From positions 445,842,001-445,906,000 of the forward strand of contig NW_027362762.1 of NCBI RefSeq assembly GCF_046119375.1: a stretch of 64,000 bases of DNA. Reading direction: 5' to 3'. A program made the translations under genes and the position numbers. This document shows, piece after piece, positions 2,785 through 54,871 of this stretch. Numbering within the stretch: position 1 is the first letter of the stretch; each line of letters starts with the position of its first letter. This stretch comes from Phyllobates terribilis (taxonomy: Eukaryota). The notes under the pieces were generated by a model that saw only the letters and a program-made list of their open reading frames with translations, was not told the origin of the DNA and ran no database searches.

Positions 2785-2883
2785 TTACTGCCACATACAC
2801 ATTGTATGCGTTTAATGGACACTGCAGAACTCAATTTTAAAGTTAGTGAATATGGTGCTGTATGAATGCTTGTGTCTCTATAA

Positions 2884-3464
2884 CAGGGATGTCAAACTCA
2901 AACACACAGAGGCCCAAAATGAAAAACTTGGACAAAATCGTGGGCCAACCAGTATACAGTATAATGGGCCCCACAAAGTCCTCCATACAGAATAATGGGC
3001 CCCACATAGTCCTCCATACAGAATAATGGGCCTCAGATAGTCCTCTATACAGAATAATGGGCCCCAGATAGTCCTCAATACAGAATAATGGGCCCACATA
3101 GTCCTCAATACAGAATAATGGGACCCAGATAGTCCTTCATATAGAATTATGGGCCCCACATAGTCCTCCATACAGAATAATGGGCCCACACATAGTCCTC
3201 CACACAATATAATGGGCCTCACATAGTTCTCCATACAGTATAATGGGCCCCACATAGTCCTCCATACCGAATAATGGGCCCCACATAGTCCTCCATACCG
3301 AATAATGGGCCCCACATAGTCCTCCATACAGAATAATGGGACCCACATAGTCCTCCATACAGAATAATGGGACCCACATAGGGGTGGCAGTTCTGGTGTC
3401 GCGGGCCAAATATAATCACACTGCGGAGCAGATTTGGCTCATGGGCCAGAGTTTGACACGTATG
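2884..3464. mobile_element. hAT (Charlie-like) MITE carrying a minisatellite
   Basis: Perfect 8-bp TSD CTCTATAA (2876-2883, 3465-3472). Imperfect TIR CAGGGATGTCAAACTC / GAGTTTGACACGTATG. Confidence 0.85.
2965..3380. repeat. 31-bp minisatellite (GGGCCCCACATAGTCCTCCATACAGAATAAT)n, ~13 copies
   Basis: Directly visible tandem unit; explains the 31-aa periodic pseudo-ORFs in the track. Confidence 0.9.
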
Positions 3465-5914: not shown

Positions 5915-6414
5915 TGTATGGTGGCTAATGGTCGCATAGTCGATGGGAGGTATGTGTCACAGAGATGTCCTCTGTGATGTAACCCGGAGTGCTTCTCTAG
6001 CGCATGTAAGCACTAAGAGGATTGTTTGGTGCGCCTGGGAGCCGGGTTCCGGGTAGTTTAGAGAGATGGGCGGGTCTAGCTACCCACATACCTCACCTCT
6101 GGGTTTGGTTAACAGCCTATAAAATGGAGGATGTTGTTTGGCACATGGTCTTTGTGTCTGGAAGGAGAAGGCCTCCTGTGTGTGGTTGTCTCCAGACTGG
6201 GCCGTGTGCTGCATGCCTACCAGTCTGTGTGACCACAGCGCTGCCTAACCAGAGACTTTAATAAATGGACTGTTTTCTTTGTTTTTGCCTGCACTAAAGG
6301 CTGTTTGTTTGCATTTTGCTTTTGACCGGTTTATGAAGCAAACAAACCGTTATGGACATTTAAAGGAACATGCCTCCTGTTTGCCATCGCATCCAAGTGA
6401 CTAACATCCCTACA
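5915..6414 (+). mobile_element. Solo LTR, 500 bp
   Basis: TGTA...TACA termini, 4-bp TSD AAGG, internal TATAAAA and AATAAA. Shares several blocks with 56622-57198. Confidence 0.7.
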
Positions 6415-6657
6415 AAGGTTACAGTGCAAATTTCTAATAATTTTACATGTAATGGGGAAGATTTATCAAGATTGTTGTCTTATTCAGCCATCCAAAAAAA
6501 AATTATTAAATTGCACCAAATTAATTGAACTTATAAATGTGTGCAGTTTGTAGTGTTACACTGTCCTAAAGTTCAAAAATGAAATATAGACCTTATATGA
6601 ATGGGTGTAGATTTGCAACAAAATGTGTGTCAAATTTCCTGGTATAAGGCTTATTAA

Positions 6658-7075
6658 AGGGGTTGTCCGGGCCTTTCACATTGATGGCCTGTCTTTAGGA
6701 TAGGCCAGCAATATCTGATAGATGAAGGTGGGACATCCCACACCCCCACTGATCAGTTGTTTCTGGTGCCTGCAGCAGCCGGAGGTGCTCAGTTGTAGGG
6801 CTGCACAGCAAAGCTCTTTCAACTGTATAGTGTCCGTAAATGAGTACTGCATATCCACCCTTAATTGAAATCAATAGGGGGTAGATGTGTACTACCCGGC
6901 CTCGGCCACTATACAGTTACGGGACTGTCCTGTGCAACTCCGCAACTGAGTTTTTCCAGCCACCACCATTGGGAACAGCTGAACCGTGAGAGTGCTGGGT
7001 GTCACACCCTCACCTATCATATTGATGACCTATCCTAAGGATAGACCATTAATGTAAAAGTCCTAGACAACCCCT
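6658..7075. mobile_element. Kolobok/T2-type MITE
   Basis: TTAA followed by AGGGGTTGTCC ... GACAACCCCT, then CTAA. Subterminal inverted blocks present. Confidence 0.75.
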
Positions 7076-7969
7076 CTAAATCTGTCTAAAAGTTGTTCAA
7101 CTTGTTAAAATCATAGGTGTTAAATATGTATGTATTGCCTTCATGGTGATATAATCCTAATTAACTTTATTATTGCTCAAAATTTGTGGTTTGCTAAAAA
7201 CATATAGCTATAGCAAATGTGAAGCTAGTGAAAGTCCAGCAGAATTAACCCTAATCTAGACAGCATACCTTTATCAGTCAGAAGAAAAGTGCCTTTTTTC
7301 TTCCAATAATTATGATATCATATCATAGTAAATACTTCTATTTAGGGAAATTCTGTTTCCTTCCAGCTGACTATAGTTCATATAAAGCAGCTGTGTTGTA
7401 AGAAAACGCCACCATTAAACACTACTGGTAGAAAATCAGATCCCAGTCGCTGGTTTGGCCACAGGGTGACAGTGTCCTACCTATTCATGTTTGCTCCCTT
7501 TTTATATAGATGGTTTTGCTATTCCAGCTAACATAATATCCTTTCTATGTTTCACACTGAATTTATCTATAATGATCAGACAATATGCCTTACAGCAGGG
7601 GCTGGCACTTCTACTGTCTTGTCTCAAAGTTTTACTAACTTGTAAAATACTTTCTTTTTTTTTTGGCCATTTGATTTTTCTATAATGCTCTGATTTTTTT
7701 AAAAAAAGAAAACAACTTTGCTAAGTACATTAAGTCTTTTGATATAGGGAGTATATTCCTGTAAATTAAATGCTTATAATCTGTAAGTTTCATTCCAATG
7801 AATATTTTATAATATGCTTTGGGAATTATTGAAGTTTCCAAAAACTAACCTAAATAAAAAATTGATTAAAAACGATTTGGTCCTGTTCATGTGATTTAAC
7901 AACTATACACTTGACATGTATGCTGGGAAAAGCTCCCTACATTCTCGTCAAGCTTATCCATATGGCTTT

Positions 7970-8238
7970 CCTATTATTATGCTTTTGCTTATATAGCGCC
8001 ATCATATTCCACAGCACTTTACATACATTTATCATCTCTGTCCCCACTGGGGTTCACTATATAGATGTCTTTGGAGTGAGGGAAAAAAAACGGACAACCT
8101 AGAGGAAACCCACGCAAACACAGGGAGAACATACAAACTCCTTGCAGATGTTGTCCTTGGTGGGATTGGAACCCAGGAACCCAGCGCTGCAAAGCAACAG
8201 TGCCACATGCCAAAGCAAACACTGAGCCACCATGCTGC
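7970..8238 (-). mobile_element. tRNA-derived V-SINE
   Basis: Minus strand reads: A box GGTGGCTCAGTG, B-box-like GGTTCCAATCC, V-domain GGAGTTTGTATGTTCTCCCTGTGTTTGCGTGGGTTTCCTC, L2-type tail, (ATA)n. Confidence 0.85.
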
Positions 8239-9775: not shown

Positions 9776-10178
9776 AGGGAACCTGTTACCATGAAAATGC
9801 AGTCCAAACTGCAAGCATCATGTTATAGAGGAGGAGTAGTTGAATACATTGTTAAATAGTTTTGTTAGTACAGATTCTGTATAACCTGAGTTTTAATCAT
9901 TTAAACTTCTGCTCTTTCTGTGATTTTCAGTCCAGTGGGCGGTCCTATCAGTGACTGACAGCTATCTCTATATGCACACCTACACAAAGACAGCTATCAA
10001 TCATTAATAGGACCGTTCACTGGACTTAAAACCCCAGAAACGGCAGAGGTTTAAATGATGAAATCACTGGATATTCTTAATCCTTTGTCACAAAACGATA
10101 CATCAGTCTACTCAGCTACTCCTGCTCTGTAAAATGGTGCCGCAGATTGGACTGCATTTTCATGGTGACAGGTTCCTA
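9776..10178. mobile_element. Kolobok/T2-type MITE
   Basis: TIR AGGGAACCTGTTACCATGAAAATGCAGTCC / GGACTGCATTTTTCATGGTGACAGGTTCC, followed by TTAA. Confidence 0.75.
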
Positions 10179-12818
10179 TTAATCACTTTTGCAATTTTAA
10201 CAATTTATTATGTTGAGGCAGCCCCTTTAAAGGAAGTTTTATATACTTTTATAGTACATTTGCATGCATGTCTGCATATGCACACGCCTCACTATTTTAG
10301 TACTTTTATACCTTTTCACCCAGCTTTAATGCAGTTAGGTTGGTATACTTACTAAACATTTATAAGAAAAGTAAACATGTGCATTGTATTATATGCAGAA
10401 ATGTTGGCGCTTACTGAGTGTATTTATGATCAATAGCTAGTGTACATATTTTATCGTTCCAATAGCTCTAAAAAATAATGAGAAAATCGTTTATAGTCCT
10501 TATTTATCATAGAAGATCAAAATGGTAAAGACATTTAACTTAATGAAGGCTGTAAACCCTAATAGGCCAGTAACAAGCAGTTTGTAGTTTAGTTATTATT
10601 TCTTTACATTCATTTAGTAAATGCTCCCAGTTCCATAATATAAGATATAAGAAAAAAAGAACATAAGACATCCTTACTAAACAGTGGGAAAACATTTTTA
10701 ATGTGCACGCACTTCAGAGATCCAGAGTAGTACATTTTACTAAAAAGTCATGTCATTTAGTCATTTATGATCATAGAAGTGAGAAACCACAAACTCAATT
10801 TAATAAATATCTTCATGTCTGTAGACATGGTAAATAATTAATGGTTTGTAGAGGCGTTACTTCTTCCAGTTGAGTGGCCTGAGAGCTGTGAAGTGCGACA
10901 CATCTACCTCTGAATTAATGACCCCTCCTTGGCCACCAGAGTGCTTTTCCATCTATTAAGAACAGTCAAATTAATGTTGGACTTGCTGTAAAACAGATTA
11001 AACTGTGTACCCCTTTGAATGCTTGACTGCGGCTTTAACGGACATGAAATTTTTCTGGTTACTTAAATGCTGTTTATTGAAATGTGGTGGTGGTCTCAAG
11101 TTAATCGTTACCCTGGATATTCAATCTTCTAAGATTTTAGCATTGATCAAAGTGTGCAATCAGAAAGAAAAAAAAAAGATGTTTGCCAGAACGTAAAATG
11201 GGGAAATCATTGCAGGTAAATCAAGATCCAAGGAATTGGTTATAGTGTTCTTGCCACAATAAAACATTATTAATTAAAAGAAAAAAAAAAGTAGTTTTAT
11301 GTCTTCCCAGGCAAAGCAGCCTTTGTGCATTAACACAATCGTAAAAGGTGTTGAAAACTTTTTCTGTGCAACCAGGTCCTATCAGATGAAAAAAATTATT
11401 TATACTTATAGTTTTATATTGACGCTTACAATCAGCAGTTCTGTTATTTGTGGCAGTGGTAAATGAAGAGTTAACATCATTTTACTGAACACTTTATACT
11501 TGTGTTTCTTCTTGACATAATTTATGAGCCTGCTGTTGCTAGCAGCTCTCTTTGGTCATTTTGCTGATGAAAGCCATTAAGTGTTGGGTTAACAACTGAT
11601 TTCAGAACTTTAGTAAGTGGAATGACTTTCAAAAGACAGACGATAGGTTCTCCCTTAACAGCTAGGCTTTAAAAAATTGGAATTTGATTGCTTCGTGGTG
11701 GTCAGGAGCCAATTGCACACCTGTCTAAGTTAACTTTCAAATTTCCTTAGAAATCTAAAATAATCACAGATGTTAGTCAATCAAAATGGTGAAATGGCTA
11801 AACCATTCCATGCTGTAGGAGGTTTATTCACACATCAGTATTTTGATCAGTATTGGTATTCCAAAGCCAGGAGTGTCCCCAAAACACAGAACAGGTGTCA
11901 ATCTTTCAGTTATCGTTTTTCTCTATAAGTTCCACTTCTGGTTTTGGCATACAAATACTGATGTAAAATGCTGACCAAATACTGACTTGAGAATGAGCCT
12001 TTAGGGCGCTGATCTCATATCAAGCCTTGATGTATCGCATTAATAACACTATACTTGGTAGGCATTCAGATCACATCAAGAAATCCATATTCAAAGGTAT
12101 TGTCAGACTAACGAAAAAAATACCCCATATATAAAAGTTAACTTTTAATCAGTGTACGTTAAAATAGTTCATCTCAACACAAAAAAACATAACTAAAGTG
12201 CAGTGCTTAAAGTGAACCAGTGCAAAGACCACGTCATATGTTCATCTAAGAAAAATGAAGGATACACTCTCCAAGTGTTCCTTCCTTATTGTGGGGGAAA
12301 TACCTTGATCAATACAAGTGGTGCCCCCACTAATACGTTGTCCTGACTCTGTGTTACTTGATTAGAACACTGGTCAAAGGAAGACACAAATCTGTAGTTA
12401 CTCAAAAGATATTAAAATTGCAAGATATGCATATAGAGTGTACCAATAGAATCTTGCAGTGTAAACCGTTTGCAAAACCACAATCAAGGCTAAAGGTAAC
12501 TATAACTTTAGATATGCAATAAATTATAGTTATAGCCCCTTTGACATCAAGTCCTCCAGTTCAAAAACTATTATACACAAACAGCCATATAGAGCTCCAG
12601 TCCTGAACATCGAGGCAATATATATATGAACAGGAAAACACTCCTACATATGCAGTCATAAACCAATCAATAGATACAAATCCCTGCCTGGGGTTTGTGG
12701 ACAAAAAAATCACAGGGCTGTAGTCACCAGCCACAACCTCGTAATGCTTAGAAATGATACAACAGATACAGCAGCCAGGGTTACTTATCTCAAGATGCAG
12801 ACGTCCTGCCCCCAGTAG

Positions 12819-12934: not shown

Positions 12935-14388
12935 CACTGTGTTCAGAATTATTAGGCAAATTGTATTTTAGAGGATTATTTTTATTATTGATCAACAACT
13001 ATGTTCTCAATCAACCCAAAAGACTCATAAATATCCAAGCTTAATATTTTTGGAAGTTGGAGTGTTTTTTTTTTTAGATTTGGCTATCTTAGGAGGATAT
13101 CTGTTTGTGCAGGTAACTATTACTGTGCCGAATTATTAGGCAACTTAATAAAAACCAAATATAATTCCATCTCGCGTGTTTATTTTCACCAGGTAAACCA
13201 ACATCAGTGCACAAACTTTAGAGATAAACATTTCTGACATGCAAAAACAAAAACCCCAAAAATTAGTGATCAATATAGCCACCTTTCTTTATGATAACAC
13301 TCAACAGCCTTTCATCCATAGATTCTGTCAGTTGCTTGATCTGTTTTCGATCAACATTGTGTGTAGCAGCCATCACAGCATCCCAGACACTGTTCCGAGA
13401 GGTGTACTGTTTTCCCTCCCTGTAGATCTCACATTTTATGATGGACCACAGGTTCTCTATGGGGTTCAGATCAGGTGAACAAGGGGGCCATGTCATTATT
13501 TTTTCTTCTTTTAGACCTTCACTGGCCAGCCACGCTGTGGAGTAGTTGGATGCATGTGATGGAGCATTGTCCTGCATGAAAATCATGTTTTTCTTGAACG
13601 ATACCGACTTCTTCCTGTACCACTGCTTGAAGAAGTTGTCTTCCAGAAACTGGCAGTAGGTCTGGGAGTTGAGCTTCACTCCATCCTCAACCCGAAAATG
13701 TCCCACAAGTTCATCTTTGATGATACCAGCCAATACCAGTACCTCACCTTCACCTTTGAAAAATCAGTCTTAAGATATTTCTTGGCCCATTCTTGGCGTT
13801 TTATCTTATGTTTCTTGTTCAAAGGTGGTCGTTTTTCAGCCTTCCTTACCTTGGCCATGTCCCTGAGTATCGCACACCTTGTGCTTTTTGATACTTCAGT
13901 AACGTTGCAGCTCTGAAATATGGCAAAACTGGTGGCGAATGGCATCTTGGCAGCTTCACGCTTGATTTTCCTCAATTCATGGGCAGTTATTTTGCGCCTA
14001 TTTTGGCCAACATGCTTCTTGCGACCCTGTTGGCTATTTGCCATGAAATGCTTGATTGTTCGATGATCACGCTTCAAAAGTTTGGAAATTTCAAGACTGC
14101 TGCATCCCTCTGCAAGACATCTCACAATTTTGGACTTTTCAGAGCCCGTCAAATCTCTCTTCTGACCCATTTTGGCAAAGGAAAGGAAGTTGCCTAATAG
14201 TTAAGCACACCTTATATAGGGTGTTGATGTCATTAGTCAACACCCCTCCTCATTACAGAGATGCACATCACCAGATTTACTTAATTGGTAGTTGGCTCTC
14301 AAGCCTATGCAGCTTGGAGTAGTACAACATGTATAAAAAGTATCATGTGATCAAAATACTCATTTGCCTAATAATTCTGAACACAGTG
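12935..14388 (-). mobile_element. Tc1-like DD37E (TRT-type) transposon with internal deletion
   Basis: TA TSDs and perfect terminal TIR CACTGTGTTCAGAATTATTAGGCAAA with inner repeats. ORF 14170-13676 is the HTH part and ORF 13733-13263 the catalytic part. There are 37 residues between D (QDN) and E (PIE). The first Asp region is deleted. Confidence 0.9.
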
Positions 14389-15461: not shown

Positions 15462-17180
15462 CTAAGAGGATCCTCCGGATCCCCTAGGACCAGGCTTATC
15501 AGGAAATCTCCTGTGAAACGCTCTGATAAGTCTGGACGCGGAAACATCATCTGACCTCACCCAAGAGTTATCCTCGGGTCCGAAACCTTTCCAGGCCACA
15601 AGATACTGCAAACTACCTCTATACCGTCTAGAGTCAAGGATGCGAGAAATTTCATATTCCCCGTCCTCCACCACCGGAGGAACAGAGGCAGAGGCGTCAC
15701 CATCCGACACAACAGCTTTTTTTAACAGAGAGACATGAAAGACCGGATTAATTCTCCAGGAGGTAGGAACCTCCAACCTAACAGCAGATTGGTTGACAAC
15801 CTGAAGCACCTTAAAGGGCCCTACAAACTTGGGACCCAATTTCTTAGAAGGAATCCTCAACCGCAGATTCCTAGAGGACAACCAAACCATGTCACCAACA
15901 GCGAACAAAACCTCCTGTCGTTTCCTATCAAAGTAGTCTTTAGATTTTCTGTTGGCCTCCTGAAGATTACCACGCACATCCGTCCAAACTCTCTCCAAAT
16001 CACCGGAAAAATTCTCCTCCTCAGGCACGGCAGATCCCAACTTGGAGAACGACCCAAACGACGGATGTCTCCCAGAACAACAAAAAAAAGGCGAACAACC
16101 AGCAGAAGAAGATGTATGATTGTTCAGAGCAAATTCGGCAAGTGGCAGAAACTCAGACCACCCCTCTTGATTGTCTGCCACAAAACAACGCAAGAACTGC
16201 TCAACATCCTGGTTTTTCCTTTCTGTCTGGCCATTAGATTCAGGATGATATCCGGACGAAAACGACAAATGAATTCCCAACCTGTCACAAAAGGCACGCC
16301 AAAAACGAGCCACGAACTGAGGACCCCTATCAGAAACAATGTCAGTAGGAACGCCATGAAGTCTGACAATTTCCTTGACAAAGGCCTTAGCGAGAGTTTT
16401 AGCGCAGGGCAGTTTGACGAAGGGAACCAAGTGACACATCTTGCTAAAACGGTCCACGACCACCCAGATGACAGTAAAACCCTCAGAGGGGGGAAGGTCA
16501 GTTATAAAGTCCATAGCCAAATGTGTCCAAGGAGCACTGGGGACCTCCAAAGGACAAAGCAACCCCGCAGCAGGAGTATGTGAGGACTTAGATCTAGCAC
16601 ATATAGTACATTGGCGCACCCACTTAATGACTTCCTTCTGCCATCCAGGCCACCAAAAACTGCGACCCACCAGTCTCTTGGTCTGAGATTCCGGGATGAC
16701 CTGCCAACCGAGATTCGTGACACTCAACAAACAAATCTCTCCTAAAGGTCTCAGGCACAAACAACCTCCCATGAGGAGTGTTAGATGGGGCATTCTCCTG
16801 AGCTTTAAGAATCTCATCTTCCAAAACAGAGTCTAAAGCAGCTATCACAACACCTTCTTGTAAAATGTTTTCCTCTTTCTCAGCACCGACTATGGGAGAA
16901 AAACTGCGAGACAAGGCATCCGCCTTAACATTCTTAGTACCAGGGATGTAAGTAACGGAGAAATTAAACCGCGAGAAAAACAGTGCCCACCTAGCCTGAC
17001 GGGCATTCAGGCGCTTGGCAGCATCAAGATATATCAGATTTTTATGATCCGTAAGAACCTGAACGGGAAATTCCGCACCTTCCAAGAAGTGGCGCCAGTG
17101 TTCAAATGCGAGTTTAATAGCCAATAATTCCCGATTACCAATATCGTAATTCAATTCAGTCTCCGAAAATTTTTTTGAAA
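15462..17180 (-). CDS. RNase H - integrase - chromodomain part of pol, split by two frameshifts
   Basis: YDIGNRELLAI and TDHKNL (RNase H); H..GHPG..CTIC zinc finger; MDF..SDRG..TER catalytic core; GPKFVGPF; YEISRILDSR..QYLVAWKGFGPEDNSW chromodomain. Confidence 0.93.
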
Positions 17181-19528
17181 AAAAAGGCACAGGGATGTAA
17201 TCCATCCCCGTTATCCTGAGACAATACTGCGCCAACCCCCACAGAGGAAGCATCAACCTCAACCAAAAACGGCCTAGTAACATCAGGCTGCATAAGGATG
17301 GGAGCAGAGGTGAACCTCTCCTTGAGATACACAAAAGCTTCAATGGCCTCAGAAGACCACTGAACCGCATCAGCACCTTTCCTGGTGAGATCAGTCAGAG
17401 GTTTGACAATACTAGAAAAATTTTTTATGAACTTTCTATAGTAATTGGCGAAACCCAAAAACCTCTGTATCGATTTCAAACCAATAGGCCTAGGCCATTC
17501 CTGCACAGCCTGAACCTTAACCGGATCCATCTCAAAACCTTTGCTGGAGATAATGTAGCCCAAAAAACTAATTCTCTGTACAGCGAACTCACATTTCTCC
17601 AGCTTAGCAAAAAGCGAATTGTCCATTAATAACTGTAATACCTCACGCACGCTCCGCCAATGAGACTCCAGATCTGGCGAATAAATCAAAATGTCATCCA
17701 AATACACAACCACATTTTTACCGATCAAAGGTCTAAGGATGTCATTAATCAGATTCTGAAAAAATGCAGGAGCATTAGTAAGACCAAAAGGCATAACCAG
17801 ATTCTCAAAATGACCCACAGGAGTGTTAAAAGCAGTCTTCCATTCATCACCCTCCTTCATGCGCAACAGATTGTATGCCCCCTTAAGGTCAATTTTAGAG
17901 AACCACTTGGCCCCCAATAACTGGTTAAACAGATCAGGAATCAATGGCAGTGGGTAAGGATTGCGTACCGTAACTTTGTTAATCTCACGAAAATCCAGAC
18001 AAGGACGTAAACCGCCGTCCTTTTTTTTTACAAAAAAAAATCCAACCGCCACAGGAGACTTAGAGGGCCTAATGTGACCGGCGGCCAAGCTTGTCTGTAT
18101 GTATTCCTCCAAAGCCTTCCTCTCAGGAATAGTAAGGTTAAATAAACGACTCTTAGGAAGAGTCGCTCCAGGGACAAATTCAATAGAACAATCATAGTCT
18201 CTATGGGGAGGCAAAACCTGCGATTCCTTCTCAGAAAAAACTCTCCAAAAATCCTGAATAGGAACAGGCAATTCTCCCCTATCCAAAGCTGCAATACGCC
18301 CGTTACAACACTTGTCATAACATTTATGGCTCCAGGATTTAATTTCACTGGTAGACCAATCCAGTACAGGATTGTGAAATTTTAACCAGGGCAAACCCAA
18401 TATTACTGGAGAAGGCAAGTTATTCAACACTACCAAATCCAATTTCTCATGGTGAACACCATTAATAGTGAGAGGAAATTCATTGACCTTGAGAGTAATA
18501 TTCTTCAAAGGGGAGCCATCCACAGAAACCACAGCAATGGGGGATGACAAAGGTTCAGGTTTTAAATTGAGTTTTTCCACGAATCCCCCATCAATTACAT
18601 TCAGTGTAGACCCGCAATCAACAAACACCCGAAATTCCATTAATTTTCCCTGAGCAATCGTGGAAGCAGCTAAAAATATACCCTTGGAATTTAAACAGGC
18701 AATACGGGCGTGACTGACCATTTTTTTTTCTTTCTTCATACGAAGCTCACAGCCTTTAATCAAATGACCAGATTTTCCGCAATAGAAACACAAGCCCTGC
18801 GAAAAACGACGGTCTTTTTCTAGAGAGCGAGGTGCCACCGATCCAATCTCCATCGGTTCACCACTGTTAGTACACACATTATCATAACCAGAAACTGACA
18901 TAGCAGAGGATTTGCTCTCATTAACCCTAGCACGCAGTCTTCTATCCACCCGTATAGCTAATTGCATAGCCTGTTGCAAATCTTCAGGTGTAGGATAAGC
19001 AATTAGCAGGTCTTTAACCCTTTCACTGAGCCCAGCAAGAAATAGACTTTTCAGAGCAGAATCGTTCCACCCTGTTTGAGTGGACCAACGACGAAAATGT
19101 GTACAATATTTTTCCACATTACCCGATCCTTGTTTTAGACGTCTCAACTCAGTCTCAGCTGATGCGACACGGTCAGGATCATCATATAATAGTCCCAAAG
19201 CAGAAAAAAAACTATCCACTGATCTGAAGCATGAATCACTAGGTTGCAAAGAAAAGGCCCACTCCTGAGGCTCTTTGCGCAAAAGTGACATTATGAACCC
19301 TACGCGCTGGGATTCATCCCCAGAGGACTTAGGTCTCAAACGAAAATACAATAAGCAAGCATTTTTAAATGAAAAAAATTCTCGGTGTTCACCAAAAAAC
19401 AAATCCGGCAAACATACCTTAGGCTCCAAGAAATGTGCTCCAGGACAGTTACTCACGTGCTGACGGAGCTCGGCCACCTCCAGAGAGAGTCCCTGCAGGC
19501 GATGAGCCAAATCCTGAACCGACACCAT
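17156..19528 (-). CDS. Gag-protease-reverse transcriptase polyprotein (frame breaks in RNase H)
   Basis: CFYCGKSGHLIKGC zinc knuckle, FVDCGS protease, MPFGL and YLDD RT motifs, VEVDASSVGVGAVL RNase H start. Confidence 0.95.
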   Translation of the reverse strand: MVSVQDLAHRLQGLSLEVAELRQHVSNCPGAHFLEPKVCLPDLFFGEHREFFSFKNACLLYFRLRPKSSGDESQRVGFIMSLLRKEPQEWAFSLQPSDSCFRSVDSFFSALGLLYDDPDRVASAETELRRLKQGSGNVEKYCTHFRRWSTQTGWNDSALKSLFLAGLSERVKDLLIAYPTPEDLQQAMQLAIRVDRRLRARVNESKSSAMSVSGYDNVCTNSGEPMEIGSVAPRSLEKDRRFSQGLCFYCGKSGHLIKGCELRMKKEKKMVSHARIACLNSKGIFLAASTIAQGKLMEFRVFVDCGSTLNVIDGGFVEKLNLKPEPLSSPIAVVSVDGSPLKNITLKVNEFPLTINGVHHEKLDLVVLNNLPSPVILGLPWLKFHNPVLDWSTSEIKSWSHKCYDKCCNGRIAALDRGELPVPIQDFWRVFSEKESQVLPPHRDYDCSIEFVPGATLPKSRLFNLTIPERKALEEYIQTSLAAGHIRPSKSPVAVGFFFVKKKDGGLRPCLDFREINKVTVRNPYPLPLIPDLFNQLLGAKWFSKIDLKGAYNLLRMKEGDEWKTAFNTPVGHFENLVMPFGLTNAPAFFQNLINDILRPLIGKNVVVYLDDILIYSPDLESHWRSVREVLQLLMDNSLFAKLEKCEFAVQRISFLGYIISSKGFEMDPVKVQAVQEWPRPIGLKSIQRFLGFANYYRKFIKNFSSIVKPLTDLTRKGADAVQWSSEAIEAFVYLKERFTSAPILMQPDVTRPFLVEVDASSVGVGAVLSQDNGDGLHPCAFFFKKIFGD

Positions 19529-30936: not shown

Positions 30937-32568
30937 CAGTACAGACCAAAAGTTTGGACACACCTTCTCATTTAAAGATTTTTCTGTATTTTCATAACTA
31001 TGAAAATTGTACATTCACACTGAAGGCATCAAAACTATGAATTAACACATGTGGAATTATATACTTAACAAAAAAGCGTGAAACAACTGAAAATATGTCT
31101 TATATTCTAGGTTCTTCAAAGTAGCCACCTTTTGCTTTGATGACTGCTTTGCACACTCTTGGCATTCTCTTGAAGAGCTTCAAGAGGTAGTCACCGGAAA
31201 TGGTCTTCCCACAATCTTGAAGGAGTTCCCAGAGATGCTTAGCACTTGTTGGCCCTTTTGCGTTCACTCTGCGGTCCAGCTCACCCCAAACCATCTCGAT
31301 TGGGTTCAGGTCTGGTGACTGTGGAGGCCAGGTCATATGACGTAGTACCCCATCACTCTCCTTCTTGGTCAAATAGCCCTTACACAGCCTGGAGGTGTGT
31401 TTGGGGTCATTGTCCTGTTGAAAAATAAATGATGGTCCAACTAAACGCAAACCGGATGGAATAGCATGCCGCTGCAAGATTCTGTGGTAGCCATCCTGGT
31501 TCAGTATGCCTTCAATTTTGAATAAATCCCCAACAGTGTCACCAGCAAAGCACCCCCACACCATCACACCTCCTCCTCCATGCTTCTCGGTGGGAACCAG
31601 GCATGTAGAGTCCATCCGTTCACCTTTTCTGCGTCGCACAAAGACACGGTGGTTGGAACCAAAGATCTCAAATTTGGACTCATCAGACCAAAGCACAGAT
31701 TTCAACTGGTTTAATGTCCATTCCTTGTGTTCTTTAGCCCAAACAAATCTCTTCTGCGTGTTGCCTGTCCTTAGCAGTGGTTTCCTAGCAGCTATTTTGC
31801 CATGAAAGCCTGCTGCACAAAGTCTCCTCTTAACAGTTGTTGAAGAAATGTGTCTGCTGCTAGAACTCTGTGTGGCATTGACCTGACCTCTAATTTGAGC
31901 TGCTGTTAACCTGCAATTTCTGAGGCTGGTGACTCGGATAAACTTATCCTCAGAAGCAGAGGTGACTCTTGGTCTTCCTTTCCTGGAGCGGTCCTTATGT
32001 TAGCCAGTTTCTTTGTAGCGCTTGATGGTTTTTGCAACTACACTTGGGGACACATTCAAAGTTTTCCCAATTTTTCGCACTGACTGACCTTCATTTCTTA
32101 AAGTAATGATGGCCACTCGTTTTTCTTTACTTAGCTGCTTTTTTCTTGCCATAATACAAATTCTAACAGTCTATTCAGTAGGACTATCAGCTGTGTATCC
32201 ACTAGACTTCTGCACAACACAACTGATGGTCCCAACCCCATTTATAAGGCAAGTAATCCCACTTATTAAACCTGACAGGGCACACCTGTGAAGTGAAAAA
32301 AAAATTTCCGGTGACTACCTCTTGAAGCTCATGAAGAGAATGCCAAGAGTGTGCAAAGCAGTCATCAAAGAAAAAGGTGGCTACTTTGAAGAACCTAGAA
32401 TATAAGACATATTTTCAGTTGTTTCTCACTTTTTTGTTAACTATATAATTCCACATGTGTCAATTCATAGTTTTGATGCCTTCTGTGTGAATGTACAATT
32501 TTCATAGTCATGAAAATACAGAAAAATTTTTAAATGAGAAGGTGTGTCCAAACTTTTGGTCTGTACTG
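30937..32568 (-). mobile_element. Full-length Tc1-like DD38E (Intruder-type) transposon
   Basis: TA TSDs and ~265-bp TIRs starting CAGTACAGACCAAAAGTTTGGACACACC. There are 38 residues between D (QDN) and E (PIE). Confidence 0.93.
31100..32152 (-). pseudogene. DD38E transposase, 350 codons with a single premature stop
   Basis: ATG at 32152 (MARKKQLSKEKR), TAA at codon 51 (32002-32000), then open through GRPR, WSDE, QQDNDPKH and SPDLNPIE to the stop at 31100. Confidence 0.88.
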
Positions 32569-46085: not shown

Positions 46086-47879
46086 ATAATAATTTGTCTC
46101 TATTTTGAACAGTGGTATAGCTTGAAACAACAGCTTTTCCTGGTTGGATACAGTATCATACTCGACGAATACCATTTTGGAGGTGTTCCTACTACTCCAT
46201 GTTTTCTTTGATAGGACTGTATAATATATTTTTCTTATTAAGGTAGGATACCATTTATCATCACCTAAAAATGGGTTTTATTGTGGCTATTGTGTATCTA
46301 TGGGGAGATATCCCCACTCTATATCTTTATTTTATTATCATCCATCTTTGATATTTACGGTAAGTTAAAAATATCTCTACCATTTTTGGGATTAACTGGA
46401 GCATTCCTTTCCATTCCGGTGGGTGCGGAAAGTATTCAGACCCCTTTAAATTTTTCACTCTTTGTTTAATTGCAGCCATTTAGTAAATTCTAAAAAGTTC
46501 ATTTTTTTCTCATTAAAGTACACTCTGCACCCCATCTTGATTGAAAAAAATACAGAAATGTAGAAATTTTTGCAAATGTATTAAAAAAGAAAAATTTAAA
46601 TATCACATGGTCATAAGTATTCAGATCCTTTGCTCAGACACTCATATTTAAGTCACATTCTGTCCATTTCCTTGTGATCCTCCTTGAGATGGTTCTACTC
46701 CTTCATTGGAGTCCAGCTGTGTTTAATTAAACTGATAGGACTTGATTTGGAAAAGCACACACCTGTCTATATAAGACCTCACAGCTCACAGTGCATGTCA
46801 GACCAAATGAGAATCATGAGCTCAAAGGAACTGCCCAAGGAGCTCAGAGACCGAATTGTGGCAAGGCACTGATCTGGCCAAGGTTACAAAAGAATTTCTG
46901 CATTACTCAAGGTTCCTAAAATCACAGTGGCCTCCATAATCCTTAAATGGAAGAAGTTTGGGACCACCAAAAGTCTTCCTAGGCCTGGCCGTCCAGCCAA
47001 ACTGAGCAAATGTGGGAGAAGAGCCTTGGTGAGAGAGGTTAAGAAGAACTCCATGATAACTGTGGCTGAGCTCCAGAGATTCAGTAGGGATATGGGAGAA
47101 AGTTTTACAAAGTCAACTATCACTGCAGCCCTCCACCAGTCGGGCCTTTATGGCAGAGTGGCCCGACGGAAGCCTCTCCTCAGTGCAAGACATATGAAAG
47201 CCCGCATAGAGTTTGCTCAAAAACACATGAAGGACTCCCAGACTGTGAGAAATAAGATTCTCTGGTCTGATGAGACGAAGATAGAACTTTTTGGTGATAA
47301 TTCTAAGCGGTATTTGTGGAGAAAACCAGGCACTGCTCATCACCTGCCCAATACAATCCCAACAGTGAAACATGGTGGTGGCAGCATCATGCTATGGGGG
47401 TGTTTTTTCAGGGACAAGATGACTGGTTACAATTGAAGCAAACATAAATTCGACCAAGTACAGAGATATCCTGGATGAAAACCTCTTCCAGAGTGCTCTG
47501 GACCTCAGACTTAGCCGAAGGTTCATCTTCCAACAAGACAATGACCCTAAGCACACAGCTAAAATAACAAAGGAGTGGCTTCAGAACAACTCTGTGACCA
47601 TTCTTGACTGGCCCAGCCAAAGCCCTGACCTAAACCCAATTGAGCATGTTACGCTCACGCCCGGACTGACTGGTGTGAGCGTGATTAGTGATCCCACTGT
47701 ACCATGAACCGAGGAGTGCCTGGAGGGGCGTAACTAAGTATCAACCCGATCCGACCAAGGTCGCACGGCGGCTTAGTCGACTCCGTGAACCAAGGAGGAA
47801 CCGAGCAGAGGGACCAGGTGCTACTCCAGGTCAGACCCCGGTCACAGTTGTTGACCCACACCGGGGAATGCAGGAACAG

Positions 47880-48165
47880 GCAGGTTAGACTGGCATACAG
47901 GCAGGTGGGTATTGGCAGGCACGGCTGGTATGTAGACAGGTGGATACTGGTAAGCACGGCCAGTATGCAGACAGGTGGGTACTTGCAAGTACGGCTGGTA
48001 TGCAGACAGGTGGGTACTGGCAAGTACGGCTGGTATGCAGACAGGTGGGCACTGGCAAGCACGGCTGGTATGCAGACAGGTGGGCACTGGCAAGCACGGC
48101 TGGTATGCAGACAGGTGGGCACTGGCAAGCATGGCTGGAGTGCAGACAGGGAGGTACTAGCAGGT
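47880..48165. repeat. 35-bp minisatellite (~8 copies) inside the solo LTR
   Basis: Unit GGCACTGGCAAGCACGGCTGGTATGCAGACAGGTG. Confidence 0.9.
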
Positions 48166-48304
48166 TGGAGCGCAGGCTGGATAGGGTCCAGTACAGACTA
48201 GGAGACAGGTACAGAGCCACAGATGCTTTAGACAAGCAGAGTAAAGTGAAACTGCCGGAGCGGAGGACAAGGCAGAGCAGAGAGGAACTGCTGGTGCGGT
48301 GAGC

Positions 48305-48640
48305 AAGCAGAGCGGAGCGAAAACCGCAGGTGCGGTGGACGAGGCAGAACAGAGCGAAACCGCAGGTGCGGTGGACAAGGCAGAGCAGAGCGGAACCGCC
48401 GGAGCTGTGGGCAAGGCAGAGCAGAGCGAAACCACAGGTTCGGTGGACAAGGCAGAGCAGAGCGAAACCGCCGGAGCGGTGGGGAAGTCAGAGCAGAGCG
48501 AAACCGCAGGAGCGGTGGGCAAGGCAGAGCAGAGAGAAGCCGCCGGAGCGGTGGGTAAGGCAGAGCAGAGAGAATCCGCCGGAGCGGTGGGTAAGTCAGA
48601 GCAGAGAGAAACCGCTGGCGCGGTGAGCAAGCAGAGTCGA
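48305..48640. repeat. 36-bp minisatellite (~9 copies) inside the solo LTR
   Basis: Unit GAGCAGAGCGAAACCGCAGGTGCGGTGGACAAGGCA; gives a 12-aa periodic pseudo-ORF. Confidence 0.9.
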
Positions 48641-50685
48641 ACAGGGCTGAAGGTGCAGGCAGAGAGGACAGGGATCTGTTCACATGGAACAGACTGGAAA
48701 ATACAGGAAGATGGCTAGAACATAGGAGGAAGATACTGAGGAAGGGAAAGGGACAAGCAGAACCAGATTCAAACAAGGTACTTACTATGAAGTAGCGAGT
48801 GGACACAAAACTCACAAACAGAAGTACAGAGACAACGAGTTGGAGTTAGGTGCAGGTTCAGATACTGCAGGAAAAGGGAAGGTACGGACATAGAGACAAA
48901 CAGGTAACAGGCTAGGATGCAGTTCAGACAGGAACTACTACTGCAAAGAGATACAAGAACAAGCCTGGGTATACAGCCCCCAGAGTGGCGGAAACAGACT
49001 AGAAGTCAGAAATAACATGCCTGGGTATGCAGCCCCCAGGGTGGCAGAAACAGACAAGATAACAGGCCTGGGTATGCGGCCCCCAGGGTTCAGAAACAGA
49101 CAAGATACGAGACAAGACCTGGCATCTCAGAGGCAAGAAGCACACTGAAAGTTAGTGTTGCTCAGTAACCTCTTTCTGGGTGGAGGGGATTTAAATATCC
49201 AGTGACTCACAGCAATAGGCTGGAGACGCATTAGGGGTGCGCCCACAGCAGCTATAAGAATCAGGAAGTAACCGAGCCGCCGCCCTAAGCAGTCAGTCAA
49301 GAGACATGCACACAGCATGAACTTGAGCAAGGTTTTCAGGCTGGACTGACAGGTAAGATTGCGGTCTTGCATGGTGGGAGGTGGTGCACTATGCAAATGT
49401 GGCGCCCCTGGGGGTTCGGTCGCCACAGGGGTACTGCATCTCTTTAATGAGGTGTGGTATCCCTCCTTCGAGGTAAGGATGGTGCGGCTGACAGGACCTC
49501 ACCTCTGCATGCAACACTACACCTCTCCCACCTGAGGGGGGCTTATATGCACCAGTGTGCTGCCCCATCCGGGATAAGAAGAGATGGGGGGAACCAAAAG
49601 ATAGGGGGAACCATGTAGTGGGTGAGGGTGGAGGACGCACATTTAGGTTACACTTAATAATTCATATTTAATAAACAGCCATCTTGGACTTATGGTCTTT
49701 TGATTGTGATCTTCATCACTGAACGTGGCTTTCTGTGTGAACCTGCAGTTGATGGGGACACGGTCCTCGTTCTCTGGCCTTGAGTTGAGGAGCGGGCAAG
49801 AGTTAACGGTTGTCTCTACCCAGTCAAGGTCCCTGCCCAAGAAGGCCTGGAGCGAAGGATTAAAGCTCCACAAGCAAAAGGATCCCAGGGGGATGCAGAC
49901 GGAGCGGTATACGCCACCTGTCCTCACTATTCTGGCCTAGCCAGAGGGACTCCTGCTGCAAAAGGGGTACCGGCCCCCGATATCTGACTCTGTCACTTCA
50001 AGTCTTAGTCGGAGAAGCCCGGAGGCTCAGTGGATCCCACCGGGTAGCGGAAGGAGCGGAGTCGCCACCCATACCCTGGTTCTGTGCATAGTCCAGAGGG
50101 AGACCCGGCCTTAGTACAAGCACTACACACGGACAGGAGGGGACCTAGTGGGAAAGTCTAGGAACACTCTGGTGCGGGGTCCTGATCAAAGTATTTGAAT
50201 AACTCGGAGGTTGTCGATCCCCGGACCTGGTGGCCGCAGCGTGCCGTGAGGAGCAGGGAGAAGCCTTGCAGCTGTGCATTCTACCGTGAGTAAAGCTTGG
50301 AAGACTACCCCTATGGCCTTCGGTTTCTTATTGCAACGTGGCACCGCACCACACCGCACCACATCTACCACTACAGCTCCCATCCTCTTGTCCCCTCTGC
50401 CCTGAGGCCCTGCTCTGCCTGTGGGGAGTAGTATCCTCTCCGGCTGCCACTACATCCCGCCTCAGAGGACTGAACGCAGCGCTGGTGGGGAATCACCAGA
50501 CACCACAGGTGGGTGTAGTCAATACAACCACTCGATTAACAACAACCCTGAAAGCCCATTACACCCTTTTAGTGTGACGGCCCTGGGCATGGAACGGGTC
50601 CAGGCCACGGCTACAACCCACCAAACATCTGACCCGGCTCCGAGTACCCCCATCTCCCAGGGAAGGGCTGCGAGCGTCACACAAC

Positions 50686-50704
50686 TGACGTAGTCGGCAG
50701 GATT
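50686..50704 (+). other. Primer-binding site complementary to tRNA-Ser
   Basis: TGACGTAGTCGGCAGGATT versus TGGCGTAGTCGGCAGGATT expected from the vertebrate tRNA-Ser 3' end (one mismatch). Confidence 0.85.
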
Positions 50705-51067
50705 GCGTGCCCGCAGCAACTCAAGAGGATTGCCCATTGCTACTGGGTACTGTGCGCCTTTTACCTCAGACTGTCATTTTCCACTTAAAATGGTGCCCGC
50801 CCAAGAAGAACGGACGCCATAATGTGTAGAAAGGACGGCGTTCAAGTACCTCCTATCTTGGGCCTGGCTCCCCCATGGCGCCAAAAGAGCAAACCGCCCC
50901 TTCCATTAGAGACTGTCCGCGGGGTAGTGCCCGTCAAGACGGATGGGATGTCCGGAGGGGGGCCTGCCAGCTCACCGCTCTGGAGCCACCCCGAAAAGAG
51001 GAGGGAACGAGGAAAATCACAAGGTGCGGCCATAACAGTCCAAGACTTACCATCCTCAGGAGCAGAC

Positions 51068-52147
51068 ATGGACGCTGCTGAGGGAAGTCTACCGGAGCCT
51101 TCCGAACCCGGCCCAGGTCCTTTTCCCGCCGACGAGGAGGGTGGCATGTCCCTGACCCTGGGAGATATTGAGTTTCTCCGGAGGGAAACCCCGGACCTTG
51201 CCCGAAGGGTAGCTGAGGCCCAGCATGCAGCGTCCGTCGCGTGGCGGGGAGAAATGCTGCAGTGGATGCGGGCCCGCCACCAAGGAGCAGCAACTCGGGA
51301 GGAAGAAGCAACAGAGGTCGCTTGCAGCCCAGGCTCGGCTGAGTGTGATACCCCCGTCCCGGCTGCTGAGCCCACCGTGCCCCTCCTGGATCTGATAACG
51401 GAGTACCTGCTACCTGGCTCGGTAACCTGGGAGCAGGTCTTTGCCCCGGAGCTGGAAGCGTCCGCCATCGCCGGAGGCCTGCATTGCCTCCCGTCTCGGA
51501 GGAACCTGTGTCTGCTGGGGAATCCACCGACCCCAACCCAAACTGGCCGCACTCCCGGAGGACTTGCAGCAGCCCCTGCTGTCACCGCTGCCCGCACCTC
51601 CAGTTACCTGGCCGGCAGCTGAAGAGTTGGTCTGGGACAACCAGGGGGGGACCTGATGGGCTTCCCCCGGGAGACCTGGGCTGAAGCGCGGAGGAGGAGC
51701 GCGCTGTGTCGGCAGCAAATCCTCCAGTTCGACCGGGAGCAACGGCAGAGGGAGGTTCGCTGCGAGCGCCTGGAAGTGCACGCCAAGGCCGCAAAATCCA
51801 GGGCCCGCCGAGAGGAGGCAGCCTGTCCAAGCCCCCGTGAGGAAGGGCAGATAGTCCGCTTCCACCACGAGGCAGGCTGGGGCTTCATAAGGAGTCCCCA
51901 GTTTGAGCAAGACGTCTTTGTCAGCTGATGGGACGTCGAGCCGCGGCTGAAGAAGGGACACACTGGCCGGAACCTCTTCCCGGGTGACTTTGCATCGTAC
52001 ACCCGCCACCACGGGGTGCGGGGGTGGTACGTTCTGGATGTTCACAAAGTGTCCAGGAGTAACGCCCCCTCGCGCTCGGCAGTGGAGGACCGACCAGCCT
52101 CCGTTGGGAGGAATGAGCCTTTTCCCCGGTGGGGACCTATGGAGTAA
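51068..52147 (+). pseudogene. Element-borne ORF (~359 codons) ending in a cold-shock domain, with two in-frame TGA stops
   Basis: Track ORFs 50822-51622 and 51656-51928 and the continuation to TAA 52145-52147 are all in one frame. CSD at 51845-52042: GQIVRFHHEAGWGFIRSPQFEQDVFVS*WDV..RNLFPGDFASYTRHHGVRGWYVLDV. Confidence 0.75.
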
Positions 52148-54871
52148 GCGGCCCTGGCGGCTGTAACCTTTTTGCAGTTATTATGTTATTATGTTCAAGT
52201 TAACCCCATGTTTTCCTCCCAGATTATAGAGACATTCGTCCCTGCGGACTTGCAGTAGACAGACTCTTCTATTTTATATAGTTTGCATCTCTTTAGGTGC
52301 TCCCTGTTGGTTTTATGCAAAACCGCGTCTACTTCTACCTCAGACCTCGGAAGAAAAACCTGTCTGGCGTGGCTCTCCTGGAGGTCCAACTCGGGATCTT
52401 CATGCCCTGCAGCCACCCCAGGGCCTACGTTGAGGGTTTGGGACAGGTCCCTCGCTCTTCTGATCTGACCTTTTCATACCGCACTTTAATCAGTCTGTCT
52501 ATATGCATAATGTCTCTGTGATGTTTTTATATGTTTTTATACTTTTGTACTATTTAAAAATTTGTAACGTTTAAGAAAAAGTGCCTCCCATAATGGGAAG
52601 ATTGTTCAATTGTTATACAAAAATATAAAAAGTCTGTACCAGGTTTTGCTCTCTTTGCAGTCCGCGGACGTGCTGTGTTTCACCAGGGGGGAATGTGGCG
52701 CCCCTGGGGGTTCGGTCACCACAGGGGTACTGCATCTCTTTAATGAGGTGTGGTATCCCTCCTTCGGGGTAACGATGGTGCGGCTGACAGGACCCCACCT
52801 CTGCATCCAACACTAGACCTCTCCCACCTGAGTGGGGCTTATATGCACCAGTGTGCTGCCCCATCCGGGATAAGAAGAGATGGGGGGGGGACCAAAAGAT
52901 AGGGGCAACCATGTAGTGGGTGAGGGTGGAGGACGCACATTTAGGTTACACTTAATAATTCATATTTAATAAACAGCCATCTTGGGCTTATTGTCTTTTG
53001 ATTGTGATCTTCATCACTGAACGTGGCTTTCTGTGTGAACCTGCAGTTGATGGGGACACGGTCCTCGTACTCTGGCCTTGAGTCGAGGAGCGGGCAAGAG
53101 TTAACGGTTGTCTCTACCCGGTTAAGGTCCCTGCCCAAGAAGGCCTGGAGCAGAGGATTAAAGCTCCACAAGCAAAAGGATCCCAGGGGGATGCAGACGG
53201 AGCGGTATACGCCACCTGTCCTCACTATTCTGGCCTAGCCAGAGGGACTCCTGCTGCAAAAGGGGTACCGGCCCCCGATATCTGACTCTGTCACTTCAAT
53301 TCTTAGTCGGAGAAGCCCGGAGGCTCAGTGGATCCCACCGGGTAGCGGAAGAAGCGGAGTCGCCACCCGTACCCTGGCTCTGTGCATAGTCCAGAGGGAG
53401 ACCCGGCCTTAGTACAAGCACTACACACGGACAGGAGAGGACCTAGTGGGAAAGTCTAGGAACACTCTGGTGCGGGGTCCTGATCAAAGCATCTGAATTA
53501 CTCGGAGGTTGTCGACCCCCGGTCCTGGTGGCCGCAGCGTGCCGTGAGGAGCAGGCAGAAGCCTTGCAGCTGTTCATTCTACCATGAGTAAAGCTTGGAA
53601 AACTACCCCTATGGCCTTCGGTTTCTTATTGCAACGCGGCACCGCACCACATCTCCCACTACAGCTCCCATTCTCTTGTCCCCTCTGCCCTGAGGCCCTG
53701 CTCCGCCTGTGGGGAGTAGTATCATCTCCGGCTGCCACTACATCCAGCCTCAGAGGACTGAACGCAGCGCTGGTGGGGAATCACCAGACACCACAGGTGG
53801 CGTAGTCAATACAACCACTCGATTAACACAAACCCTGAAAGCCCATTACACCCTTTTAGTGTGACGGCCCTGGGCACGGAACGGGTCCAGGCCACGGCTA
53901 CAACCCACCAAACATCTGACCCGGCTCCGAGTACCCCCATCTCCCAGGGAAGGGCTGCGAGCGTCACACACAAGCACGCTGCCAGGGATGTTACAGAGCA
54001 TCTCTGGAGAGACCTGAAAATGGCTGTCCACCAACGTTCACCATCCAACCTGACGGAACTGGAGAGGATCTGCAAGGAAGAATGGCAGAGGATCCCCAAA
54101 TCCAGGTGTGAAAAACTTGTTGCATCGTTCCCAAGAAGACTCATGTCTGTACTAGCTCAAAAGGGTGCTTCTACTCAATACTGAGCAAAGGGTCTGAATA
54201 CTTATGACCATGTGATATTTCAGTTTTTCTTTTTTAATACATTTGCAAACATTTCTACATTTCTGGGGGGTTTTTTTCAGTCAAGATGGGGTGCAGAGTG
54301 TACTTTAATAAAAAAAAATGAACTTTTTAGAATTTACCAAATGGCTGCAATGAAGCAAAGAGAGAAAAATGTAAAGAGGTCTGAATACTTTCATTACCCA
54401 CTGTATATCTCTCATAGCATGGGATTTAGCATCTGGAATATGTATTTACTAGTTTTTAATCCCACGTCCTACTGTGTGTAGAAATTGCATTTTTTTTTAG
54501 GGATTTTTTATCGTGACTGCCTTCTAGTGCTTCACAGAACTGACATGTTCAGTAGATATTTTGAAGACATTCATGCCTCTTTTCCTCAATACACACTCTA
54601 TCCGTCTAGCGGCTGGTTACATGGGGTTGCGGTCTACTTGCTTTGAGGGATTTTATGTCATGTGACCACACTCTAGTGCTTCACAGAACGGACATGTGCA
54701 GTAGACATTTTGAAGACATTCAGGCCTCTTTTTCTCTATACACACTCTATCCCTCTATCGTTTTGATACTTTTTGATCAGAATTGGATTGGCTATATAAA
54801 CCAGCTCTGCCATTCCTGGGATACACACGCACCAAGTATGTTGTGGAGTTGTGCTTGTCCATCCGTTCTGG

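Follow-up and report, generated by a model that had tools for sequence, protein, structure and literature searches.

A 64,000-nucleotide stretch of the genome of the frog Phyllobates terribilis (contig NW_027362762.1, positions 445,842,001 to 445,906,000; hereafter the window) carries on its plus strand, at 49398-53970, a complete long terminal repeat (LTR) element with a cold-shock domain (CSD) in its only long open reading frame (ORF). The element is bounded by two direct repeats of about 1.28 kb with TG...CA ends, the 5' LTR at 49398-50683 and the 3' LTR at 52694-53970. According to a repeat search and pairwise alignment, the two LTRs mismatch at 41 of 1273 aligned positions, with 13 gap columns, giving 96.8% identity at aligned positions and a Kimura two-parameter distance (K2P) of 0.033. 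An 18-nt primer-binding site (PBS; 50686-50703) starts 3 nt past the 5' LTR and matches the complement of a tRNA-Ser 3' end at 17 of 18 positions; the pattern occurs once in the 64 kb, against 0.02 occurrences expected by chance. The polypurine tract (PPT), AGGGGGGAA (52685-52693), directly adjoins the 3' LTR and is kept in all copies. The 2,010 nt between the LTRs contain the remnant of the ORF (50822-52147) and a 3' untranslated interior (52148-52684). Because no tRNA genes for PBS comparison were found in the window or in the loci of the relatives described below, the tRNA identity was taken from printed oligonucleotides, in this case a human tRNA-Ser template oligo sequence (PMC3299991).

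The coding capacity of the element is very limited. Among the pieces of the main frame the CSD was the sole Pfam match, with no protease, reverse transcriptase (RT), RNase H or integrase, and a six-frame scan found no CCHC, YxDD or HHCC motif. No Rfam family matched within the element. The original prediction, which was made from the sequence alone, had described a complete LTR element with two LTRs of about 1.28 kb, a Ser PBS and a PPT, lacking both pol and a CCHC knuckle, and this description holds in all its parts.

The ORF runs on the plus strand from an ATG at 50822 to a TAA at 52145-52147, and would ancestrally have specified about 440 amino acids in the subfamily of the window copy. It now holds in-frame TGA codons at 51620-51622 and 51926-51928. 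The first of these lies within a 146-nt out-of-frame stretch (51498-51643), which a three-copy nucleotide alignment attributes to deletions of 7, 1 and 1 nt when compared with the sister copy L001. The second interrupts the CSD itself (51845-52048), a Y-box-like domain recognised from Pfam PF00313, from its relatives and from its predicted fold. The frame had been predicted at 51068-52147; it is real and has that end, while its start lies upstream at the ATG and the out-of-frame stretch was missed. Likewise, the TGA in the CSD had been suggested to be an arginine codon lost by a single CGA to TGA change. The arginine is right, but the codon is CGG in both sister copies, L001 and L002, so two changes are needed. 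The window copy is dead and non-functional: it is an inactivated insertion, and an old one, given an LTR divergence of 3.3%.

Sister copies of the element were found by using the N-terminal 266 residues of the window ORF as a protein query, which matched two P. terribilis gene models only. The matched models, annotated as 'fibrinogen-like protein 1' and 'jeltraxin-like', take their first exons from the element ORF. Both loci (L001 and L002) hold complete sister copies, with the order LTR-PBS-ORF-PPT-LTR and 82-91% nucleotide identity to the window copy. Of all copies found, those nearest to the window copy are from P. terribilis, at 85-88% identity. L001 has lost 160 bp near the start of the ORF and carries three nonsense codons; L002 has 1-nt and 2-nt deletions, as well as a shortened G-run that is common to it and the window copy. 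Since the lesions differ among the three copies, the frame of their common ancestor was open, over about 440 codons.

The two gene models occupy 10001-21899 of L001 and 10001-46575 of L002 (P. terribilis, GCA_046119375.1). They are either annotation chimeras or cases of real exonisation of the element.

The architecture of LTRs with a CSD-encoding ORF recurs in six related copies (L001 to L006) from three genomes of dendrobatoid frogs, the group of poison and rocket frogs, with L005 rearranged. All comparisons were made copy by copy and on natural sequences. L003 from P. terribilis and L004 and L006 from Anomaloglossus belong to more distant subfamilies. L003 (encoding protein P0007) has LTRs of 1247 bp that are 100% identical (K2P 0), a target-site duplication (TSD) of ACAA, and a frame open over 617 codons, the start of which aligns with that of the window ORF. 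The LTRs of L004 (P0003) are 99.5% identical (K2P 0.0055) and its ORF has 481 codons; those of L006 (P0012) are 99.8% identical (K2P 0.0017), with the TSD TAAA. The ORF is also intact in L005, from Ranitomeya variabilis (P0004). Intact ORFs in the relatives measure 382-617 amino acids. Those of the young copies L003, L004 and L006 are without stops; in L003, L004 and L005, 12-28 stops were counted in the remaining two frames. Clean 4-bp TSDs are present in L002 (AATG), L003 and L006, and the variation in their sequence between copies fits independent insertions. Pol was not found in any of the examined copies.

The family, which is present in two frog families, Aromobatidae and Dendrobatidae, thus has a recurring layout: LTRs of 1.15-1.29 kb, a tRNA-Ser PBS, a PPT, an interior of 2.0-2.6 kb, and one ORF of about 380-620 amino acids, with no enzymes. 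These comparisons indicate a family that is long-lived, diversified and recently active. Recent activity is indicated by the LTR K2P values of 0-0.0055 in L003, L004 and L006, together with their ORFs free of stops.

One of the Anomaloglossus copies has itself been invaded. Within the CSD ORF of L006 is nested an unrelated RT-encoding element with an ORF of 1142 amino acids (4776-8204), which accounts for the extra 4.9 kb of this copy. This ORF had no Pfam match at E <= 0.001; inspection by eye shows YIDD, an RT motif, and a C-terminus resembling GIY-YIG, which makes a Penelope-like element probable. The nested element is flanked on both sides by a duplicated 263 bp of the host ORF (5104-5366 is identical to 9984-10246).

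CSDs in general are RNA- and DNA-binding domains, and recognition of the one in the window copy alone is marginal. Pieces of the window ORF matched Pfam PF00313 with E values of 0.003-0.011 and 16.1-17.7 bits, below the cut-off of 27 bits, and L001 scored 17.4 bits, with a match that spans model positions 8-65 of 66. Three relatives score above the cut-off (P0007 with 36.9 bits, P0012 with 32.1 and P0016 with 33.7) and two below it (P0003 with 23.7 and P0004 with 24.1). When the complete set of PDB sequences was searched with a profile of the family domain, only CSD-containing entries were found, with YB-1 and YBX2 as the best (E 2e-8). This required the family profile, as PDB sequence searches with single domain pieces from the window copy or L001 gave spurious matches only.

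A profile of the window subfamily, run with HMMER exhaustively against 1.84 billion representative proteins, returned 62 matches. Those with a single domain are five dendrobatoid frog proteins, two from Anomaloglossus baeobatrachus and one each from Ranitomeya variabilis, Ranitomeya imitator and P. terribilis, all annotated 'uncharacterized protein'. Ten out of ten other matches that were checked are multi-CSD proteins, from dinoflagellates wherever a species was named. These were considered as a clue to the origin of the CSD and set aside as uninformative, since their scores sum over repeats. Protein searches with the full-length family alignment, which was swamped by low-complexity words, and with the CSD region of P0007 found only P0007 itself.

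Structure prediction agrees with the profile searches. For the intact relative P0007, with a domain 42-44% identical to the window CSD, an AlphaFold2 model of that domain, built from a nine-row family alignment, has five strands and a predicted local distance difference test score (pLDDT) of 84.8. A first model from a shallow alignment of the window subfamily was of low confidence (pLDDT 44.8), with the same strand order. The top Foldseek matches of the P0007 model are CspA, CspE, CspC and YB-1, with target template-modelling (TM) scores of up to 0.90, and of 0.87-0.90 to CspA and CspC. The motifs GWGFI (the ribonucleoprotein motif RNP1, GxGFI) and VFV (RNP2) are conserved across the family. 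In the original prediction the domain differed from CspA by a 5-residue loop insertion. The extra loop exists, but eukaryotic CSDs of the Y-box type normally have this long beta3-beta4 loop, and the family loop matches that of YB-1 with a gap of at most one residue. Because relatives pass the Pfam cut-off, the PDB profile matches CSDs only and the predicted five-strand barrel matches CspA and YB-1, the domain can be regarded as a genuine CSD, so that a resemblance which is marginal in the window copy is settled by relatives and modelling. At the level of sequence the family CSD is about 31-32% identical to YB-1 and 36% identical to bacterial CspA; the former value indicates that it is no recent copy of a Y-box gene.

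The protein encoded by the family consists of a poorly conserved N-terminus rich in Pro, Ala, Ser and Glu, a highly charged segment of about 50 residues, the Y-box-like CSD, and a short charged tail. The N-terminal 200-460 residues are of low complexity, 57-69% of them being Pro, Ala, Ser, Thr, Gly, Glu or Gln, and can scarcely be aligned between subfamilies; by its composition this part looks disordered. Of the 48 residues ahead of the CSD, 62-79% are charged, Gln or Ala. Only a short distance separates the PBS from the downstream start of the ORF, and the first residues encoded are conserved from one subfamily to another. Pfam searches with the members gave no match to a Gag, capsid or matrix family at E up to 1-10.

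Selection on the ORF was examined in the window copy, L001 and L002, placed in the ancestral frame, by the ratio of nonsynonymous to synonymous substitution rates (dN/dS). Over the whole ORF the ratio is 0.32-0.45 in frame versus about 1.0-1.3 in the two other frames (Fisher p 4e-5 to 7e-13). In the 69 codons of the CSD core it is below 1, at 0.15-0.23, versus 0.6-2.8 in the other two (Fisher p 2e-5 to 2e-3), which makes the CSD the most constrained part of the ORF. This pattern indicates purifying selection on the ORF, most of all on the CSD. The active lineage would have been under stronger constraint than the measured values show, because dead copies also decay neutrally once inserted and owe part of their divergence to this. 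In comparisons across subfamilies dN/dS is not computable, as dS has reached saturation; there, the CSDs retain 41-55% amino acid identity and the N-termini barely align. The attribution of the CSD to a retroelement lineage, as in the original prediction, is thereby borne out: the domain is found in every copy examined, lesions differ between copies, constraint peaks in the CSD, and young intact ORFs exist elsewhere.

The LTR bodies of the distant subfamilies have no BLAST match to the window LTR, and what the subfamilies share outside the ORF is a set of short sequences. The first 13 nt of the window LTR, TGTGGCGCCCCTG, are found exactly in L001, L002, L004 and L006 and as a variant in L003. 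The match of the PBS to tRNA-Ser is perfect in L001 and L003. In L004 and L006 the PBS is complementary to another tRNA-Ser, with the 3' end of tRNA-Ser-CGA as given in PMC9659620, so that the PBSs of the family correspond to two tRNA-Ser isoacceptors. An 18-nt motif, CAGYCCGNGGACGTGCTG (52658-52675, plus strand), lies about 10 nt upstream of the PPT after a pyrimidine-rich run, and is nearly invariant in six aligned copies (window, L001, L002, L003, L004 and L006) despite diverged surroundings. It may be a signal for recognition by a helper or for RNA processing. The pyrimidine-rich run ahead of it ends in CAG, so that the arrangement resembles a splice acceptor.

Just 3' of the PBS, a stem of the form GUGCCC.../...GGGUAC with a nested hairpin is predicted at 50707-50750 (plus strand). 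The stem GUGCCCG/CGGGUAC is predicted in four folded copies with very different loops (the window copy, L001 9717-9780, L003 9205-9240 and L004 9754-9790). This recurrence suggests a conserved structure; there is no covariation, and the folding energies are mostly unremarkable, with L004 alone beyond shuffled controls (z = -3.0). Taken together, the shared LTR tip, the PBS-Ser, the PPT, CAGYCCGNGGACGTGCTG and the stem fit cis signals kept for shared or related helper machinery. Another stretch, 52347-52465, is the most conserved part of the 3' untranslated interior within the window subfamily, with 92-97% identity among the window copy, L001 and L002, which equals or exceeds the conservation of nearly every stretch of the ORF. 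It is unrecognisable in the distant subfamilies.

With reasonable rather than high confidence, we favour the explanation that the window element is an inactivated copy of a non-autonomous LTR family of dendrobatoid frogs, which is mobilised by a helper and encodes a CSD protein that handles the element's own RNA. An autonomous LTR element or endogenous retrovirus (ERV) would reverse-transcribe and integrate the family in trans, presumably recognising the conserved LTR tips, the PBS-Ser, the PPT and the motif adjacent to the PPT. The CSD protein would bind the single-stranded RNA of its own element, probably during translation, and could act as a multimerising RNA chaperone, a stabiliser or a packaging adaptor that brings this RNA into the particles of the helper. 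The probable role of the CSD protein, to bind the RNA and to chaperone or help package it, would be analogous to that of the Gag nucleocapsid (NC) or of LINE-1 ORF1p, with a protein that has no capsid.

The known types of retroelement RNA coating are the zinc knuckle of Gag-NC and the RNA-recognition motif (RRM) of the ORF1p of long interspersed elements (LINEs). It is tempting to speculate that the frog lineage gave up Gag, Pol and Env for a long-term parasitism of another element, and that its CSD chaperone represents a third type, which lets its RNA compete for helper particles. We offer this extension tentatively, as a possibility that may well turn out to be wrong.

Several points speak against a helper-mobilised family with an RNA-handling CSD protein. 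No helper was found: scans of the window and the fetched loci for the patterns of the LTR tip and the PBS returned the known copies alone. Both the action of the CSD protein on RNA and the mobilisation in trans are steps that we infer. The His of VFVH is replaced in the family by Ser, Thr, Ala or Asn, and the position of the beta1 Trp is variable; both are base-stacking positions of YB-1, and the binding mode of the family CSD may thus differ from that of YB-1. The estimates of dN/dS come from three close copies only, and the intact relatives were located via protein annotation, which biases the sample towards open ORFs. In L005 the structure is rearranged and the 3' LTR alone is recognisable. 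The window copy itself has an imperfect TSD: if the LTR is taken to end at ...GTCACA, as in the relatives, a candidate 5' TSD of CAAA (49394-49397) faces CACA at 53969-53972, a match of three positions in four. The flanks of the element (49300-49397 and 53971-54184) also appear, by eye, to be non-adjacent parts of a Tc1-like transposon.

The Tc1-type flanks and the imperfect TSD could both be explained if the Tc1 copy had suffered a deletion beforehand, or if a deletion or recombination accompanied the insertion. An ORF in the 3' flank that looks Tc1-like by eye had no Pfam match.

The evidence of selection does not by itself point to packaging. Y-box proteins mask and stabilise maternal mRNA, and the CSD protein might similarly mask or stabilise the transcripts of the element in germ cells, or disrupt silencing by small RNAs or at translation, instead of acting in packaging or reverse transcription. 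The Y-box-like layout of the protein, with an N-terminus rich in Ala and Pro ahead of the CSD and a charged tail behind it, agrees with such a host-directed function, and a fast-evolving N-terminal region would suit an interface in a conflict with the host. This possibility also predicts selection on the ORF, so that the present data fit it and the packaging explanation alike. We nevertheless consider it unlikely.

A rather different possibility is that the ORF is of no use for propagation. Acutely transforming retroviruses carry host genes, and a defective ERV or LTR element could similarly have transduced the mRNA of a host Y-box-like CSD protein and kept it as a passenger. Among solved structures the family CSD is nearest to the vertebrate YB-1 and YBX2, it has the long loop of eukaryotic domains, no gag-like domain is detectable, and repeated capture of CSDs has been reported in bird ERVs (PMC12287698). 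A useless ORF should decay, yet the frame is open in young copies of deeply diverged subfamilies from two frog families, and constraint is strongest precisely in the CSD. Furthermore, identity to YB-1 (about 31-32%) is no closer than that to CspA (36%), so any capture would have been ancient and followed by long retention. These observations make a mere passenger quite improbable.

The ORF could also be a leftover Gag, of the order matrix-capsid-nucleocapsid, with the CSD in place of the zinc-knuckle NC. Its position speaks for this: it is the sole ORF after the PBS and leader, it starts close to the PBS with first residues that are conserved between subfamilies, and it encodes a nucleic-acid-binding domain near the C-terminus. 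At E up to 1, however, no member matches any family of Gag, capsid or matrix proteins, and the N-terminus, judged from composition and alignment, is a hardly alignable region dominated by seven residue types (57-69% Pro/Ala/Ser/Thr/Gly/Glu/Gln), unlike a folded capsid. A degenerate Gag is accordingly also quite improbable, and the nucleocapsid substitute of the original prediction is unlikely in the strict sense of an NC within Gag, given the absence of a capsid-like domain and the low complexity and poor alignability of the N-terminus. A chance resemblance to the CSD, or an origin of the LTR-ORF-LTR units as segmental duplications of a host gene, has a negligible probability: the window copy alone is indeed below the Pfam cut-off, but the Pfam scores of the relatives, the PDB profile, the predicted fold and the pairing of the LTRs exclude a chance match, and the copies lie in different genomic contexts with their own TSDs and with LTRs that are more alike within copies than between them.

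The rest of the window holds other mobile elements. A nearly intact Ty3/gypsy chromovirus occupies 15462-19528 on the minus strand and extends across three overlapping ORFs, which encode gag, a CCHC knuckle (by eye), an aspartyl protease, RT, RNase H, integrase, an SH3-like domain and a chromodomain. The chromovirus and the CSD element have unrelated LTRs. Remnants of Tc1/mariner-type transposases with Pfam matches to HTH_Tnp_Tc3_2 and DDE_3 are found at 46927-47436 (plus strand), 31100-31705 (minus strand) and 13263-14170 (minus strand). Tandem arrays of 35-nt and 36-nt units (48000-48680) lie directly upstream of the 5' flank of the CSD element. An ORF of 156 amino acids on the minus strand (2878-3348) consists of a repeated peptide of about 20 residues and is probably a translated tandem DNA repeat.

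Non-autonomous LTR elements are usually viewed either as non-coding, as with LARD, TRIM and VL30, or as keeping a normal gag. In plants, the TR-GAG elements and BARE-2 are non-autonomous LTR retrotransposons with a gag-type ORF only. They share with the frog family the pol-less order LTR-PBS-single ORF-PPT-LTR and mobilisation in trans (proposed for the frog family), and their ORF is presumed to help package its own RNA. Their ORFs are recognisable Gag proteins with a capsid and usually a zinc knuckle, whereas the frog ORF encodes a CSD and no detectable Gag domain. LINE-1 ORF1p coats the transcript of its own element and serves it as an RNA chaperone. As an analogy only, its layout resembles that of the frog protein: the N-terminus is disordered, a charged helical segment follows, then a domain for binding single-stranded RNA, and finally a tail. 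ORF1p differs in belonging to a non-LTR element and in having an RRM instead of a CSD. Among cellular proteins, YBX1 and YBX2/FRGY2 are the best matches with solved structures (E 2e-8), with the long beta3-beta4 loop and with GxGFI and VFV kept. The differences are an identity of about 31-32%, the encoding of the frog protein within an LTR element as a single exon, and the loss of conservation at the beta1 Trp and at the His after VFV of YB-1.

The closest known parallel is found in birds. Pfam CSDs were reported in 46 bird ERVs, which belong to two major groups and reflect several acquisitions, and the authors propose that the CSD benefits ERV proliferation (PMC12287698; Mol Biol Evol 2025). 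The statement in the original prediction that no LTR family with this cargo had been described is therefore outdated. Both systems are vertebrate LTR retroelements carrying a PF00313 CSD. The bird ERVs are classified by their RT and keep pol, whereas the frog element has neither; their CSDs stand at various positions and were acquired repeatedly, whereas the CSD protein of the frogs is the sole ORF of a long-lived non-autonomous family. A literature search, with Repbase and Dfam outside its scope, turned up the bird ERV report alone and no publication on CSD elements in frogs or on ones that lack pol. In a structure search of BFVD the fold appeared only in proteins of phages and giant viruses, and in none of retroviruses. 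What is already known is thus the presence of CSDs in bird ERVs; what is new here is the layout of a gag-only non-autonomous element with a CSD in place of Gag.

For genome annotation, the family has the consequence that pieces of its ORF are fused into RefSeq-type gene models of P. terribilis, and that its intact copies are labelled 'uncharacterized protein'. The naturally intact and very young copies, such as the one encoding P0007, make the role of the CSD directly testable. The captures by bird ERVs and the frog family together point to a recurrent advantage of CSDs for retroelements. A family that keeps a CSD protein alone under selection would show that a retroelement can swap the classical nucleocapsid for an RNA chaperone fold of the cellular type.

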